A stretch of 64,000 nt of DNA, taken from positions 28,954,001-29,018,000 of the forward strand of contig NW_026262593.1 in NCBI RefSeq assembly GCF_021869535.1, in the 5' to 3' direction. Source of the DNA: Mytilus californianus. Taxonomy: Eukaryota. The stretch's first letter is position 1, and every line of letters begins with the position of its first letter. Shown piece by piece: positions 25,862 through 33,355 of the stretch. The notes under the pieces were generated by a model. It worked only from the letters and a program-made list of their open reading frames with translations. It did not search any database and was not told the origin of the DNA. A program made the position numbers and the translations under genes.

Positions 25862-27659
25862 CTGAAATTACAGTAAAATTTTCTTAGATCTGTAAAAATT
25901 CTGACATCCCAACTCTTCGGATCAGCTTAATCCTAAATTGAAACATGCTATGTAAGATGTTATCAAAGTTTTATGAACTTTAATTGGAACATGAAACCCC
26001 CTGATTTTTATTGCATATGTATTTCTGATGTATTGCATATTTTGAGTTTTTTTCTCTTGCTGATCTGTTTTAATTACCATGCTGCACATACAGGGCCTTT
26101 CAGTATTTTTATATATAGGGTGCTTTATAAATTTTCATTTTCATCATCATTTCTGTTCAGGAAGCGAGAAGATACTAGTGAACTTGATAGTAAAATACTT
26201 AAAATATCAAGATGTTCACTTGTGATAGGTCTGTAGAACATAACTCATTCGCTGTATATTATAGAATATTACAAGACTTTTTACCGTACTTAAGGCATAT
26301 TAACTGAGAGATAAGTATGACTAGAGACAATAACATACCAATAAATGCTTTACACTATCATTGTATGAAGAAAATTATACAACAACAGTTTTGAAGGCCA
26401 ACATAATTGAGTAATATTTTTTAAATGTTTATTATCTCCCCTTCCCAGATTTGTTGCATCATATTATGATGAAATAGACATATAAACTCTAGATTAAAAA
26501 ATATTGTTTCCATTTAAGTTTCTAGAGTTCCTATCCCATTTCTGCAACTGTTATAAGTTAAATCCTGCTTCTTATTCAAGCAAACCGCTCTTTTTAAATT
26601 GTACTTATATATTATACCTAAATAAAAATAAGGCTCGCCAATTGCAAGCCCCGAGTTCTTTCTAAGATGATTTTGTTATTGACGTACTCAGCTATATGTT
26701 TTTTACTCCGATCTTATCAGAAATCAATTCAAAAGTTTAGATATAAAAATTTGGTTTGACATGGTGCTTTTAGATATTATGAAAAGTGGTTTATCAAAAT
26801 TTCATTTATGCCAGGATGTTATATGAAAATTTCAGAGGAAATAATTGAGCTCACTTGTATTTATTTTCATCTGAAATTTGCAGAAAGACACATCATCTGA
26901 TGTAAGTTTATCATTTATTTGTATGTTATAAACCAGCAGCTCTAGTTTCTATCAAGTACACAAATTCACCCTTATACAAATTAATTTCTAATGTTGAAGG
27001 ACAATCTTCTGCTTTTCATTAAAATAGTCATACAATTTTCAGAATTCAAATGAAAATCTTTTTAAGGTATATTTTTTGTGTAAGTAGCAATCTTTGTCCA
27101 ACATTATAAGAAGGGGAGATAATAAACAAATTAATACAAAATAGGAAATTTCTTGACACATTCAAGTTTTTCCTTTCTTTTCCTTTCATTTGACATCAAA
27201 AGGCCTAATGCCTTTGCTCAATTGTTTTTTTCTTTAAATCAAAATAGCATAATTTTTTTTCTGAGGATTTTATGTGTTATATGTGTATATACATGTAGCA
27301 TGAAAGTCAATTATGGTAGCTACAAGTTTACATCAGCTAATTTTTCCTTTATTTCAATTTATTTTATCCATTGTCAATGTTGGTTGTTGTCACAAATCCC
27401 AAAACCCAACCAAAACATTCAAGTAAAATGATTTATTTATACATTTATGTTGAATTCTTAGTGTTGAATTTGTGTCACAAATGCTAACTTACATTAAGAT
27501 GTCAGTTATTTAAGTGATCAAACTAAACCAAAATTAACTAGATTTGATCAATAGAACTAACAATTGTTTATCTTATATCTTGAATATACATGTAACACCA
27601 ACATTTTGATATATTTTTACATTATTTAACACTGAAATTAGTAAACGTGTTGTTTTCAA

Positions 27660-27847
27660 TTTTATATGAATTTGGTTAAATATACTTACCAGGATTTACT
27701 ATTATAAATATAAAATATGTTCTGCGTTTTAGTATGTTGCCAATCGCAAAAACATCGAGGAGACCGAGATCTTTAAACATCCGGTATGTTATGAAATCTA
27801 CTCACTCGATTCAAGGTAAGTTCAGTTTTATTTTTTGCGTTCAATTG
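27660..27847 (+). repeat. DIRS left ITR
   Basis: Reverse complement of about 32939-33130 with scattered mismatches. The shared core includes CAATCGCAAAAACATCGAGGAGACCGAGATCTTTAAACATCCGGTATGTTATGAAATCTACTCACTCGATTCAAGGTAAGTTCAGTTTTATT. Confidence 0.95.
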
Positions 27848-27926
27848 AACGGATGTTCTCATCGTAATTTAATATATAACTAGTATAACTTGTCAAAGTT
27901 TTATAATTACATCGATTTTCAACTAT

Positions 27927-29534
27927 ATGGACCGGTCTTCTTTGTACGAAGACACGCAGGAAAGTATTACTATAAAACCTGTTTCACCAAAGTCTGCAAG
28001 CACAAGCAAAGAGCCGCTGAAAACAACAGGTAAAAAGAAAAAGGTGTCAAAATCGGAAAAAATGCAGTCCGAATATGACAGAAAACTCCAAAGTATGGAG
28101 GAGAACTTTAATTGCAAGTTAGACAAACTTTTTGGTTTGTTAGCATCAAACAATCAGAAAAGGGAATCATTGCTCAGATCTGATTGTGTGAATATGGGTA
28201 ACCTCCCGTCTGGGGAGAGTAGGCCATTAATTTCACTAGAACCAAACTTGGACCTAAATCTGGGGTCGCCAAGAGTTTCTAGAAACCAAGATTTTGATAA
28301 TAGATCAGAGATATCTATACATGTACACCAAACTGAAAGGCATGATTTAGATATGAGATCAGATTATGATAGTGGGTCTGGAGGTAGTCCAGTTAGACAA
28401 CCCAATGATGAATTTATTTTACAAAATGACAATGTAAATAATCGTAAATGTGAACGATTTATTAATCATGTGCAAAACTCAAATGAAGGTTTTCCCCTGA
28501 ATGAGAATGTTGAGTCTGAACAAGGGCAGGCAGTCAATAAGAATGTTAACTTTTTAGCCAAAATATTTAAAGAAGATATTGCTAAAGACAAATCTAGTCT
28601 TGGATTAGTGTTAGACCAGGCACAGGTACATATATTGGAAAATTCCTGGCGTTCTAAAAACCCAGAAAGAATTTCTGCTTACAAAGAGGAATACAAGAAT
28701 GTTTCCCCTATTCATGATAGTTCGGTCGAATTTTTGCAAGTTGCAAAATTAGACGACTTACTTGAACCCATGTTGAGACAGACACATGGTGAAAAGGCTG
28801 TAAAATCTTGGGACAATCACAGGCAACTGTATTCACAACCACTCAAACAGATAGAGAAATTGGGTTTTCAGGGGCAATTAAGTGCAAGAATGAACATTAT
28901 TTCTGTTCTCTATATGCAACAAGCTCTAGGTTCACTTTTACAAACTCTTGAGAGTGATGATTTTGAGAAAGATGAAGTTTGTCAAACTATTAAAGATGTT
29001 TTTGCCATGTCGACTAAAACACTTGACCAAGCAGGCCGTACAGGTGCCTTTTTACATTTGGTCCGTAGGCAAGCTGCAGCTCAGGATTCAGGCTTAACAG
29101 GGTTGAAAGATATGAGCAGTAAATGCCAATATCTACCGCTTACAAATGATGGGGTATTTGGCAAAGGGCTTGAAATAGCTTTGGAAAAGCGCAAAGAGCA
29201 AAAAGAACAACTCTCTGATCTTTTACCAGAATTCAGTAGAAAGAGAAAGTTTGAAAATAATGCTCGTGAAAAGGGAAACAATAAGGTTTCCAGGTATTCT
29301 AGTGTGTCAGGTGGGCAAAACATTAAGAACAATAATAATGTGAAATCAAATTCTAATGCTACTAGTACATTTCCCAACTATAGGAAACCTGCACAGAATT
29401 TTCAGAAAGACAAGACAGCATCAGCACCTAGACAGAGTGGACAAGATGCAAACAAGACCGGCTTTAAGTCTGGCAAGAGTGCTACACAGTCCTCATGGGG
29501 TTCTTTTCTGATCCCCAAGAGAAAGGATAGCTGA
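27927..29534 (+). CDS. DIRS ORF1, gag-like protein, 535 aa
   Basis: Uninterrupted ORF between the left ITR and RT, with a low-complexity basic C-terminus. The gag call rests on its position in a DIRS element, not on a recognised domain. Confidence 0.8.
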   Translation: MDRSSLYEDTQESITIKPVSPKSASTSKEPLKTTGKKKKVSKSEKMQSEYDRKLQSMEENFNCKLDKLFGLLASNNQKRESLLRSDCVNMGNLPSGESRPLISLEPNLDLNLGSPRVSRNQDFDNRSEISIHVHQTERHDLDMRSDYDSGSGGSPVRQPNDEFILQNDNVNNRKCERFINHVQNSNEGFPLNENVESEQGQAVNKNVNFLAKIFKEDIAKDKSSLGLVLDQAQVHILENSWRSKNPERISAYKEEYKNVSPIHDSSVEFLQVAKLDDLLEPMLRQTHGEKAVKSWDNHRQLYSQPLKQIEKLGFQGQLSARMNIISVLYMQQALGSLLQTLESDDFEKDEVCQTIKDVFAMSTKTLDQAGRTGAFLHLVRRQAAAQDSGLTGLKDMSSKCQYLPLTNDGVFGKGLEIALEKRKEQKEQLSDLLPEFSRKRKFENNAREKGNNKVSRYSSVSGGQNIKNNNNVKSNSNATSTFPNYRKPAQNFQKDKTASAPRQSGQDANKTGFKSGKSATQSSWGSFLIPKRKDS

Positions 29535-29553
29535 CTCAGAAGTAAGTTTTTTA

Positions 29554-31597
29554 ATGTTTCCAGAGATACCTGTAGGGGGTCGATTACAAAAATTCCTTCA
29601 AAATTGGGAGAAAATAACATCAGATCAGTGGGTTCTCTCAATTGTAAAAGAGGGATACAAACTAGAATTCATTCAAAAACCTCTTTGGACGGGGATAAGA
29701 AAGACATTTGTACAAAAAGACCATCTAGGTATTTTTATGCAAGAAATAAATGCTTTATTGGAAAAAGACGTAATAGAAAAGGTTCATTTTCCACATTATG
29801 TAAAAGGTTTTTACAGCACGTTATTTCTAGTCCCAAAGAAAAATGGGAAGTTAAGAATGGTGACAAATTTAAAACCCCTAAACAGTTATCTCAAGAAAAT
29901 TCATTTCAGAATGGACACTATGCCAAAAGTAATAAATTTAGTGAAACCAAACGATTGGGCAATATCTCTCGATCTATCGGATGCATATTTTCACGTCCCA
30001 ATTTATCAATTTCACAGACAATACATGAGGTTCTGTGTTCAAAACCAATGTTATCGATGGAAAGCAATGTGTTTTGGTCCAACTTGTGCACCACAAATTT
30101 TCACAAAAATTGTATCAGTGGTGGCAGCATATCTCAGAGCTCAGAATGTGAGAATGGTGGTATATTTGGACGATTGGATGATAATCAATCAAGAGAAAAT
30201 TCAATTATTAAAAGATCGAGAGAAATGTCTCAATCTGATAGTCTCACTAGGTTTCATAATAAACAAAGAGAAATCAAGTTTAATTCCAAGTCAATCAGTG
30301 ACTTACCTAGGGGGAGTTTTTTCATCTACAAAAGGGAATAGTAGTTCCTACATTAGAGAGAATTCAAAAATTACAAATGTTAATTCAGAACATGCAGAAT
30401 TGGAAGACAATAGCTTTCGATTTTCTTCGGATTCTTGGTGTGATGGCATCATGTATAGAGTTGATTCCAAATGCACGTCTATACATGAGACCAATACAAT
30501 TACACCTTTTAAGTTTTTGGAATCCAATTTGCAGAGATATGACATTGGAAATTCCATTTACTCAAAATCTAAAATACCATCTATTATGGTGGACAAATTC
30601 AGTGAACACGCTGAAAGGCCGATCTTTAGTATCTCCAATATCCACTGTTACAGTCACGACAGATGCTTCCAAAAGTGGTTTTGGGGGTTATGTTGGGAAT
30701 CAATTATTCCAAGGGGAATGGAGTCCACAACAGAAAGAGTGGCATATAAATTGCTTAGAAATGAAAGCAGTTTACTTGACAATGAAACATTTCATGAGTC
30801 TGTTAGAGAACAAGTGTGTTCTCATCAGAAGCGACAATACAAGTGTTGTCCAATATATCAATTGCCAGGGAGGGACAAAATCAACCAGTCTTTGTCTTTT
30901 AACTTGGGAATTATGGCAGATGGACATTCAGAACAAGATAGTTTTGAAGGCAGCACATATAATGGGCAAGAAAAATGTGTTGGCAGATCAATTAAGTCGA
31001 ATAAAAATACGACAAACAGAATGGACATTGAACAAGACAATTGTCAATCAAATATTTCATCATTGGGGTACTCCAGTGATAGATCTATTTGCGTCCTGGG
31101 AGAACAGACAGACAGAGGTTTTCTGTACATGGATTCCTCATCCCAATGCACTAGCTTTGGATGCATTAACAATTCCATGGGAGAACATGTTTGCCTATGT
31201 GTTCCCTCCAATTTGTCTGATTCCGAAGATATTAAGATATATGAGGCAGTTCCATTGTCAGATTATCTTAATAGCACCTCAGTGGCTAAGGAGACAATGG
31301 TATCCGGACATTCTAGTTATTGATAGCTCCTCCTATCAGAATTCCACAATGGGAGAATTTATTGACTCAGCCCAAAACCCAAATTTGCCATCCAATTCTC
31401 AAATGTTGAATTTAACTGCATGGCTCCTCTCGACAGAAACTTCAAAGCAGAAGGATTTTCTGAATCGGCTAGAAACTTGCTCAATGCATCTTGCGTGTCT
31501 TGGCGAAAGGGTACAAGAAAAGACTATATTACAAAATTCGAAAAGTACAATAGCTGGTGTGGTGAGAAACAAATTAATCCCTATAAAGCTACTTTAA
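29554..31597 (+). pseudogene. DIRS pol: reverse transcriptase, RNase H and DNA N6-adenine methyltransferase-like domain; 681 aa after repairing indels
   Basis: RT motifs SLDLSDAYFHVPI and YLDD (30163-30174). RNase H motifs TTDASKSGFGG, HINCLEMKAV and RSDNTSVVQYIN. MT motifs IDLFAS, DAL..PW and YVFPP. Broken by +T at 30317-30322 and by compensating -2/-1 deletions at about 31316 and 31395. Confidence 0.93.
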
Positions 31598-32420
31598 ATC
31601 AGGTTGCTGATTTTTTGGCTTATCTGTTTGAATTAGGTCTGCAGTACAGAACAATATCTGGGTATCGCTCTATGTTATCAGCGGTGTTACCACCAATTGA
31701 AAATTATCAGGTTGTCAACATCCTTATATTTCAAGGCTGATAAAAGGAGTTTTTCATTCTAGGCCTCCAAAGGTTAATTTATTACCTGAATGGGATTTAG
31801 AGATGGTTCTCAAAACTTTAGAGAATGAACCTTTTGAACCTTTATCTGATGCATCTTTAAAGTTTGTTACTTTTAAAACAGTTTTTCTCATTGCTATAAC
31901 AACTTTTAGAAGATGCAGTGATATACAAAGTCTTAGAATTGATAAAGAGTCTATGAGGGTTCAGGACAAAGGTATAACTTTCATTAGACATGGACTTTCA
32001 AAACAAGATAGGCAAAGTCATTTTGGAACAAAAATTCATGTACCTCATTTCGCAGAAAGAGAGTTTTTAGATCCAAAAAGGCCAATAACTATTTATTTGG
32101 ATAAAACCAAGGAAATAAGACAGAAGTTAGATGCATCTGACAAAGTCAAATTATTTTTAGCAATGAAAGAACCTCATAAACCTGTAACAGCAGTGACAAT
32201 TTCTAGTTGGATTGTCCAAACAATCAGGTCTGCTTATTCAAATGACAAATTAAAGGTCAAAGGTCATTCAACAAGAGCAATTGCTCCTAGTTGGGCTTTA
32301 TATAAGGGAGCTTCTACAAAATCAATTTTAGATGCGGCAGATTGGTCATCTGAATCAACTTTTGTAAGATTCTATTTACGAGATATAGATTCTGACAAAG
32401 TATTACAAAAGACTTGTTAA
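31420..32420 (+). pseudogene. DIRS tyrosine recombinase (C-terminal part of a much longer overlapping frame)
   Basis: N-terminal core-binding region WRKGTRKDY...FLAYLFELGLQYRTISGYRSMLS. Catalytic motifs TTFRRCSD (R), KGHSTR (HSTR at 32265-32276) and AADWSSESTFVRFY (W, Y). A 1-nt deletion at about 31714 splits it into the track ORFs 31420-31740 and 31803-32420. Confidence 0.93.
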
Positions 32421-32771
32421 TAGAACATATACCACAAAGAAATTATTGTATATAAAGATAAAAAAAGTTTTACATAATTTAATTTTATAAAATTGATATG
32501 ATATTGATACAATTTTATTTATGGACAAATGTATATAGTGCATGTATACAAAGTATTACATAATGTTTATTATATAAATTTTTCAGGATGATGACTAGTA
32601 GTATCCTGTAAATAGTTATTTTGTTTTTGGTGGAAGTTTTTTATTGGGCGACAGTATTTTACATTTTAATGGAACTGTATTTTGGTGTGTTTTCTTCTGA
32701 GGAATATTTCTTCATATCCAAGAAATTTATCCGCCACCTGCTAAGCACTGCTTGTTAATCAGTGAGTATTC

Positions 32772-32890
32772 TATATTTATAATAGTAAATCATGGTAAGT
32801 ATATTTAACCAAATTCATATAAAATGGTAATTTTTGTAATCTCAAGAAGAGATTTTATATGAATTTATAGGGTTAAATATACTTACCAGG
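32772..32890 (+). repeat. DIRS internal complementary region (ICR)
   Basis: 32772-32824 is the reverse complement of the left terminus (27660-27712, one mismatch). 32825-32890 is the reverse complement of the right terminus (about 33092-33157, one mismatch). The halves are joined through AAAA at 32821-32824. Confidence 0.95.
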
Positions 32891-32938
32891 AACCACCACC
32901 ACCCCGATATAAATTTCTTTTTGGTGTATATTGGTTAT

Positions 32939-33161
32939 CCAATTAAACGCCAAATAAAACTGAACTTACCTTGAATCGAGTGAGTAGATTTCATAACATA
33001 CCGGATGTTTAAAGATCTCGGTCTCCTCGATGTTTTTGCGATTGGGAACATACTAAAACGTGGAACGTATTCTATATCTATAATAGTAAATCCTGGTAAG
33101 TATATTTAACCCTATAAATTCATATAAAATCTCTTCTTGAGATTTCAAAAATTACCATTTT
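32939..33161 (-). repeat. DIRS right ITR plus right extension (rE, about 33131-33157)
   Basis: Inverted copy of the left ITR, followed by CTCTTCTTGAGATTTCAAAAATTACCA. This extension is absent from the left end but complementary to the ICR. Confidence 0.93.
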
Positions 33162-33214
33162 TTTCAGCATGATATGCCATTATTGTTCTTTATACATGTG
33201 TAAATGCATGTTAC

Positions 33215-33355
33215 CTTAGAGTTGGGTATTCTAACATCACACCATCGTCCATCAATCATATGCCTCTGTGTCATACATTTCACTTGTGATTCATAGTCAC
33301 CAAACCGAATGAAACCAAAGCCTTTTGATAGTCCACTTTTAGGATCTTTTTTCAC
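33215..33355 (-). CDS. TARDBP: TDP-43 coding exon 3 (rest of RRM1), 141 nt
   Basis: Acceptor TTCAG|GTG and donor AAG|GTAACA. Encodes [47 protein letters not shown], with RNP1 KGFGFIRF. Same 141-nt length as the human exon. Confidence 0.97.

Follow-up and report, generated by a model that had tools for sequence, protein, structure and literature searches.

How a retrotransposon makes two enzymes, a reverse transcriptase polyprotein and a tyrosine recombinase, from three open reading frames (ORFs) that overlap is the question raised by a DIRS1-like element in the genome of the mussel Mytilus californianus. The DNA analysed here, which we call the window, is a stretch of 64,000 nucleotides (RefSeq assembly GCF_021869535.1, contig NW_026262593.1, positions 28,954,001 to 29,018,000 of the forward strand; all coordinates below are those of the window). 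Its plus strand holds, at 27654-33161, a whole DIRS1-like retrotransposon with its termini, in which gag, pol and the tyrosine recombinase (YR) gene lie between inverted repeats. Many animals, fungi and amoebae carry DIRS elements in abundance, and the centromeres of Dictyostelium are made of them. A first reading of the window, made from its letters only (the sequence-only reading), had proposed that the gag frame stays open past the gag stop codon, over all of pol and into YR. Here we follow this hidden frame through the window copy and its intact relatives.

The gag frame reopens past its stop codon and runs across pol

With frames labelled by coordinate modulo 3, frame 0 is open from 27873 to 29531 (gag), is closed at 29532 by a TGA that is followed by C, and reopens from 29535 to 30338 for the first 268 codons of the hidden frame. 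Frame 1 is open over 603 codons from 29512 to 31320, its first half encoding the reverse transcriptase (RT) and its second half, which is nonsense for pol, continuing the hidden frame; it is open again from 31366 to 31737 (core-binding part of YR). Frame 2 is open from 30311 to 31594 (RNase H and methyltransferase-like part of pol, RH-MT), and frame 0 once more from 31701 to 32417 (catalytic part of YR). When the proteins of an intact relative (L031; numbers with L denote loci) were mapped on the window and sibling copies were aligned with it, frame breaks were located near 30311-30340, 31315, 31394 and 31701-31740. All are small insertions or deletions relative to the sibling copies, and those near 31315 and 31394 compensate each other in RH-MT. 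The window copy is broken at the four places where the sequence-only reading had put its repairs, and the gag frame does continue past the TGA-C at 29532 into YR once these breaks are allowed for. The 962-codon frame obtained by that repair exists unbroken in nature, with 963 (L031), 955 (L032), 959 (L033) and 965 codons (L037). The unbroken frame was read from natural intact copies. A further statement, that the hidden frame lacks an ATG for more than 150 codons past the gag stop, holds for the window copy and fails in its sibling L003 (92% identical), where codon 32 is an ATG; several more distant intact lineages have no ATG in this frame for 289-505 codons.

Intact relatives share one layout

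Positions 27927-32420 hold the coding core of the element, a decayed copy of a DIRS1-like tyrosine-recombinase retrotransposon that belongs to a mussel family and is now dead. The host genome (1.65 Gb, AT-rich) contains at least 51 related stretches at 65-98% identity, and proteins 85-92% identical are found in M. edulis, M. coruscus and M. galloprovincialis. In diverged subfamilies of the host genome (L017, L020, L021, L022 and L026) the gag frame is open for 400-815 codons past the sequence AGY-TGA-CTC, across pol, as it is in L005 if one frame break is allowed. This AGY-TGA-CTC is kept in four diverged subfamilies of the host genome; host copies L006-L010 are too decayed to inform.

A word-based protein search with the natural 815-codon ORF of L021 as query recovered full-length ORFs of 925-990 amino acids from other samples. 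We refer to these as X-YR, X being the segment between the gag stop and the recombinase domains. In L031, L032, L033 and L037 gag ends in TGA-C, X-YR follows in the same frame, and a pol of 711-784 codons is nested at +1; over all intact relatives whose stops were mapped, X-YR in frame with a gag TGA-C spans 955-1003 codons. A profile built from 12 natural X-YR ORFs (alignment A1) matched 31,737 representatives at E <= 0.001, of which 4631 reach E <= 1e-30, and the best 150 matches are nearly all 920-1000 amino acids long and align end to end. The succession of gag, stop and X-YR with a nested pol is thus the standard layout of a very large family.

Scanning metagenome contigs with A1 added 80 loci. 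Counting as intact an element with an X-YR of at least 850 codons and a pol of at least 600 codons, we found 48 intact elements among the 88 searched loci with pol and YR matches, and in 48/48 pol lies in the +1 frame of X-YR. The 39 intact elements in which gag was found (including L041) fall into 36 clusters at 60% identity, hereafter lineages. In 32/36, X-YR shares the frame of gag, begins with the codon directly following its stop and comprises 955-1013 stop-free codons. Two lineages have X-YR at +1 of gag, open from 236-407 nt upstream of the gag stop, and in the remaining two pol is in the gag frame and X-YR at -1 of gag; in both minority arrangements X is open from 34-407 nt upstream of the gag stop. 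Taken together, these comparisons make it near certain that the hidden frame is an N-terminal extension, X, of about 690 codons, of a recombinase ORF that reads X, core-binding domain and catalytic YR domain, with the RT-RH-MT pol nested in it at +1.

The minority elements show which phase relation varies. L034 and L035 have X at +1 and pol at -1 of gag; in L039, L100 and L114 gag and pol share a frame and X is at -1. X-YR is fixed as the -1 frame of pol, and gag occurs in each of the three phases. The last sense codon of gag in L034 and L035 is Lys, preceded by A (A-AAA-TAG and A-AAG-TAG). In L034 (2233-2256) gag ends in TAG-TAA, and an in-frame TGA-C stands two codons past the TAA (AAC-TGA-CAG); this TGA-C is similar to the majority's gag stop and may be left over from the majority arrangement.

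Pol codons are selected to keep X free of stops

We permuted synonymous codons within pol, keeping protein and codon usage, and counted stops in the hidden frame. For the RT piece of the window 12.1 +/- 2.4 stops are expected and for the RH-MT piece 15.2 +/- 2.7; none is observed in either, and 0/1000 shuffles reach zero in each case. L021 likewise has none (30.7 +/- 4 expected), L017 has one (32.0 expected), and L038-L041 have none each (27-40 expected). The sequence-only reading had named a consensus with stops in the hidden frame as refuting; across the 48 natural intact elements this frame has no stop at all, against about 30 expected per element. Non-overlapped controls behave as expected (gag, 65 stops against 67.5; YR, 20 against 26), and in the other alternative frame of pol stops are above expectation. 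The signal lies in third bases: before codons beginning with AA, AG or GA, pol codons end in T in 0-2 of about 170 cases, compared with about 34% elsewhere, and where a TGA-stop lineage shows such a case, the gag stop itself is among those counted. It is near certain that selection on third bases in pol codons keeps X stop-free.

X is conserved in its openness and not in its sequence

Intact elements share a fraction of 0.59-0.69 of their amino acids in pol, 0.55-0.69 in YR, 0.41-0.55 in gag and only 0.36-0.46 in X. At codons for the same amino acid the third bases are identical in a fraction of 0.469 (pol), 0.450 (gag) and 0.460 (YR), and at four-fold sites in 0.361, 0.341 and 0.344, respectively. 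The suppression of synonymous variation in pol that the sequence-only reading had led one to look for is not seen; pol sites vary as freely as those of gag and YR, which rules out an X polypeptide constrained in sequence.

X is basic and rich in serine (15-18%), with few hydrophobic residues (24%). A Pfam search of X matched no family. An AlphaFold2 model made with the 12 sequences of A1 gave essentially no secondary structure over residues 1-602 (predicted local distance difference test, pLDDT, 24-38), the core-binding domain being the sole confidently folded part (pLDDT 72-86). Of the proposal that the overprinted segment is a polypeptide kept open by selection, the openness under selection stands, but the segment is not a polypeptide constrained in sequence, given its free synonymous variation and the lack of a predicted fold. 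These data show that X is conserved in its amino acids no further than pol dictates, that X is predicted to be unfolded, and that it behaves as a translated spacer and not as a domain. A frame that is stop-free yet free in sequence is what one expects if ribosomes must cross X to reach YR.

Compared with the same frame of shuffled pol, X of L031, L038 and L040 has more serine and fewer hydrophobic residues, by 4-5 standard deviations. This bias may be a side effect of keeping T-ending codons away from AA, AG and GA, or may reflect weak selection on X to be a spacer that is soluble and unfolded.

The gag stop is of a leaky type

In the 32 lineages with gag and X-YR in one frame, the gag stop is TGA-C in 21, TGA-G in 1, TGA-T in 1, TAG-G in 6 and TAG-C in 3, and it is never TAA. 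The terminators of the same elements are composed differently: over the 36 lineages X-YR ends in TGA 13 times (TGA-C once), TAG 12 times and TAA 11 times, and pol in TGA 4, TAG 23 and TAA 9 times. TGA-C thus makes up 21/32 gag stops against 1/72 pol and X-YR terminators (p = 5e-13), and TAA 0/32 against 20/72 (p = 3e-4), in lineages whose element GC content ranges from 37% to 61%. UGA-C and UAG-G are classic leaky stop contexts and TAA is the tightest stop. We considered whether a conserved Asp codon of pol dictates TGA-C, which is ruled out by the TAG-G, TAG-C and TGA-G lineages, where the overlying pol codon gives Arg, Ser or Glu. Since the pol-frame codon over the stop varies in this way, it is the stop and its context that are kept, and on this point the sequence-only reading withstands the check that it had named. 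In addition, in nine lineages (L038, L040, L062, L064, L067, L077, L084, L087 and L088) X has no ATG for 289-505 codons and is stop-free from the gag stop on.

A leaky gag stop that is never TAA, together with an X free of ATG in nine lineages, favours the proposal that YR is made by readthrough as a Gag-X-YR protein. Specifically, ribosomes would read through the leaky gag stop (UGA-C in the window element) into X and yield a low-abundance Gag-X-YR fusion of about 1500 residues, which could tether the recombinase to Gag assemblies. Judged from comparative sequence evidence, this is the best-supported mechanism, and we put its probability at roughly 0.6.

Several observations weigh against readthrough. 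RNAalifold found no conserved RNA structure 3' of the gag stop in eight lineages (-8.7 kcal/mol, no covariation); such stimulatory structures are common to many readthrough cases, although they are not obligatory for the UGA-C type. X-frame ATGs 21-105 nt past the stop in several mussel lineages could allow internal initiation, and gag is in another phase in 4/36 lineages, so readthrough is not universal. A linker of 690 unconstrained residues is a costly design. The lineages counted are related, and their numbers overstate independence. Finally, Tca2 of Candida albicans has an in-frame UGA between gag and the downstream ORF, pol, and there the flanking context alone gave no readthrough in reporters (PMC2194720), which cautions against taking a UGA in frame as proof of readthrough.

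Other routes to the recombinase

X-YR might instead be a separate protein, not fused to Gag, that is begun inside X soon after the end of gag, at an AUG 21 to 105 nt downstream or at a codon other than AUG, through reinitiation, leaky scanning or internal entry. L032 and L033 have an X-frame ATG at +21/+24, and L003, L005, the L017 group, L031 and L037 have one at about +96 to +105; ORF callers annotate such ATGs as starts. The ATG at +105, for its part, coincides with a conserved Gln-Trp of pol (CAA-TGG) and is replaced by GTG in the window and in L011, and a start of this kind is hard to place in the nine lineages with ATG-free X. Reinitiation after an ORF of 500 codons is inefficient in eukaryotes, which also counts against this route, and the leaky type of the gag stop, with TAA in 0/32 lineages, would be left unexplained. 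We consider a separate start unlikely.

Considerably less probable is that X is never translated, with YR made from its own conserved ATG at 31420 or from a spliced or subgenomic RNA lacking gag and pol. This ATG, with which the MAPLDRN ORF begins, is kept in all lineages compared. It is, however, forced by the other frame, where it overlaps the invariant Ala-Trp (GCA-TGG) of the LxAWxLS motif at the pol C terminus, so its conservation is no evidence for a start codon. An untranslated X would moreover gather some 30 stops, of which the 48 intact elements have none, and openness of X is not demanded by a spliced RNA. The gag stop of L038 lies only 12 nt from the conserved motif of pol, too little for the spacing between branch point and acceptor. 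We had also looked at GTAAG past the stop as a splice donor and at CTGAC as a branch point. Within the mussel clade the pol frame has a conserved Val codon at this GTA, L038, L040 and L041 lack the motifs or have them too close together, and a reading by splicing is possible but not needed.

Slightly less probable still is a Gag-Pol-YR protein made by a -1 frameshift near the end of pol, to which the openness of X would be incidental. All 48 intact elements do have X-YR at -1 of pol, and pol reaches over the beginning of the YR region. Yet the last 150 pol codons of 12 intact elements contain no canonical X_XXY_YYZ heptamer in pol phase, and a frameshift there needs only a short overlap, leaving about 690 stop-free codons and the leaky gag stop unexplained. 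That pol codon usage opened so long a frame by compositional accident can practically be dismissed: alternative frames can in general be open by chance, but 2000 pol shuffles gave a minimum of 16 stops and never 0, the other alternative frame exceeds its expected stops, and the feature recurs over the whole range of GC content given above.

Expression of pol

The conserved N-terminal motif of pol starts 12-45 nt past the gag stop. In every case the pol frame stays open over that stop, and it overlaps gag by 50-431 nt in intact type-A elements; its first ATG comes only 190-420 nt past the gag stop in L031, L033, L038, L040, L064, L067, L084, L087 and L088. The lack of a nearby AUG in many lineages suggests that pol is probably produced as a Gag-Pol fusion through a +1 frameshift in the short gag/pol overlap. 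In the window copy a pol-frame TGA (29509-29511) lies 21 nt upstream of the gag stop and goes with a CGG-to-CTG difference in gag relative to L003; the 20-nt pol/gag overlap that it leaves is probably the result of decay after insertion.

Stop codons are known to stimulate +1 frameshifting at the antizyme site (UCC-UGA-U) and the bacterial RF2 site (CUU-UGA-C). The DIRS elements resemble these systems in that pol, at +1 of gag, overlaps it at the gag stop and often has its AUG far away; they differ in that no shared shift site, conserved shift heptamer or stimulator was identified at the gag/pol overlap.

Combining the two predicted events, we tentatively suggest, as a possibility that we hold to be rather doubtful, that the end of gag acts as a recoding hub in DIRS1-like elements. 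Termination there would give Gag, readthrough of UGA-C or UAG-G would give Gag-X-YR by way of the 2-kb stop-free spacer, and a +1 frameshift would give Gag-Pol; minority lineages permute the phases, with X staying at -1 of pol.

Features of the window element

The coordinates of the element are collected in Table 1. The internal complementary region (ICR) matches both termini: its part 32767-32830 pairs with the left terminus (27654-27717) and its part 32821-32891 with the right terminus (33091-33161). The element has the features of DIRS1-like retrotransposons, namely a tyrosine recombinase and not a DDE integrase, an RT and RNase H of the Ty3/gypsy type, inverted terminal repeats (ITRs) with an ICR, and a long overlap of YR and pol. 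The Phage_integrase match in the window scores 25.4 bits (E = 1.4e-5), slightly under the Pfam cut-off of 27.1; the YR motifs R, HxxR, W and Y are present in the window ORF and are invariant or nearly so in alignment A1. No Pfam match covers the C-terminal third of pol, its putative methyltransferase-like part, which is conserved among relatives (58% identity to L031). No protease family was matched by Pfam among the window proteins, in which RVT_1 is present (E = 1e-24) and RT_RNaseH and RVT_3 are weak.

Table 1. Parts of the DIRS1-like element in the window, with the basis of each assignment.
Feature	Coordinates	Strand	Basis or remark
Whole DIRS1-like element including termini	27654..33161	+	Inverted repeats and internal complementary region
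Left inverted terminal repeat	27674..27833		160 nt, 96% complementary to 32952-33111
gag ORF, 535 codons and stop	27927..29534	+	ORF list; 45% identity to L031 gag; no Pfam match
pol, RT part, +1 frame relative to gag	29512..30336	+	RVT_1 E = 1e-24; tblastn against L031 pol
gag stop TGA and next base C	29532..29535	+	Stop map of the window
X, first piece (gag frame), overprinted on RT	29535..30338	+	268 open codons; aligns with L031 X
pol, RNase H and methyltransferase-like part, frame-shifted copy	30311..31594	+	Weak RT_RNaseH/RVT_3; 58% identity to L031 pol
X, second piece, past the break near 30311-30340, overprinted on RH-MT	30340..31320	+	Open until TGA 31321; aligns with L031 X
YR core-binding (SAM-like) domain	31366..31737	+	Weak Phage_int_SAM_4/5 matches
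YR catalytic domain and stop	31701..32420	+	Phage_integrase E = 1.4e-5; 60% identity to L031
Internal complementary region (left and right ICR)	32767..32891		Matches both termini
Right inverted terminal repeat	32952..33111		Partner of 27674-27833

On the opposite strand, a few bases past the right terminus of the element, a 63-codon ORF (33164-33355) resembles the first RNA recognition motif (RRM1) of TDP-43 (motifs KGFGFIRF and MIDGRWCD). Its position indicates that the element lies inside or beside a host TDP-43 gene, in antisense orientation.

Discussion

Dual coding itself is not new for DIRS1-like elements. Overlapping YR and pol ORFs in relatives of DIRS-1, which the sequence-only reading had taken as established, are indeed on record (PMC3266345, PMC6681497): Piednoel et al. 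2011 described an overlap of pol and YR that can be considerable and leaves the catalytic YR domain in a 3' end free of overlap, and found long overlaps in half of 28 elements and none in the mollusc elements surveyed (PMC3266345), and extensive ORF overlap in DIRS elements is restated elsewhere (PMC6681497, PMC9210276, PMC3783388). The mussel family shares gag, a pol with RT, RH and a putative MT part, YR, ITRs, ICR and the pol/YR overlap with Dictyostelium DIRS-1 and its animal relatives, and differs from the mollusc elements of that survey in having a long overlap (PMC3266345). The DIRS literature that we searched describes the overlap, but not an in-frame leaky gag stop, full nesting of pol, an unconstrained X or a mechanism of expression; we found in it no statement of readthrough or frameshifting for DIRS, although an earlier mention in Poulter and Goodwin 2005 is possible. 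What this analysis adds is the expression model, together with figures for a selection that acts on openness only, a leaky gag stop in frame with X-YR across lineages, X and pol starts that often have no AUG nearby, a nesting of pol that is constantly at +1, and three arrangements of the phases.

Comparison with other systems sets off what is particular here. Gammaretroviruses of the murine leukaemia virus (MuLV) type have one in-frame leaky gag stop, past which a minority of ribosomes make a Gag fusion carrying the enzyme. The DIRS elements have the same in-frame leaky gag stop, a subset of lineages even with TAG-G, but the predicted readthrough product of the mussel family carries the recombinase and not pol, after an overprinted spacer of about 690 codons, and unlike MuLV no stimulatory pseudoknot was found past the mussel gag stop. 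Overprinted genes of viruses offer the other parallel, in that two frames are read over 2 kb and the younger one is serine-rich, hydrophilic and predicted to be disordered; whereas the viral pairs are constrained in both frames, with reduced synonymous variation, X is conserved only in its absence of stops.

The overlap also affects annotation. Prokaryote-style ORF callers call gag and X-YR and never pol, and among the Mytilus gene models labelled 'uncharacterized', P0001, P0002, P0004 and P0008 either combine RVT_1 with Phage_integrase or contain pieces of the X frame; these models stitch together two overlapping frames of decayed DIRS copies. With pol dropped by the callers and both frames fused in eukaryotic models, the annotation of DIRS elements is systematically misleading.

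A 2-kb frame that is selected only for its lack of stops would be an unusual form of dual coding. If the end of gag does act as a recoding hub, neither enzyme would need an AUG of its own, splicing or a protease. The comparative signature described here gives a testable hypothesis for how pol and the recombinase are expressed from three overlapping ORFs.

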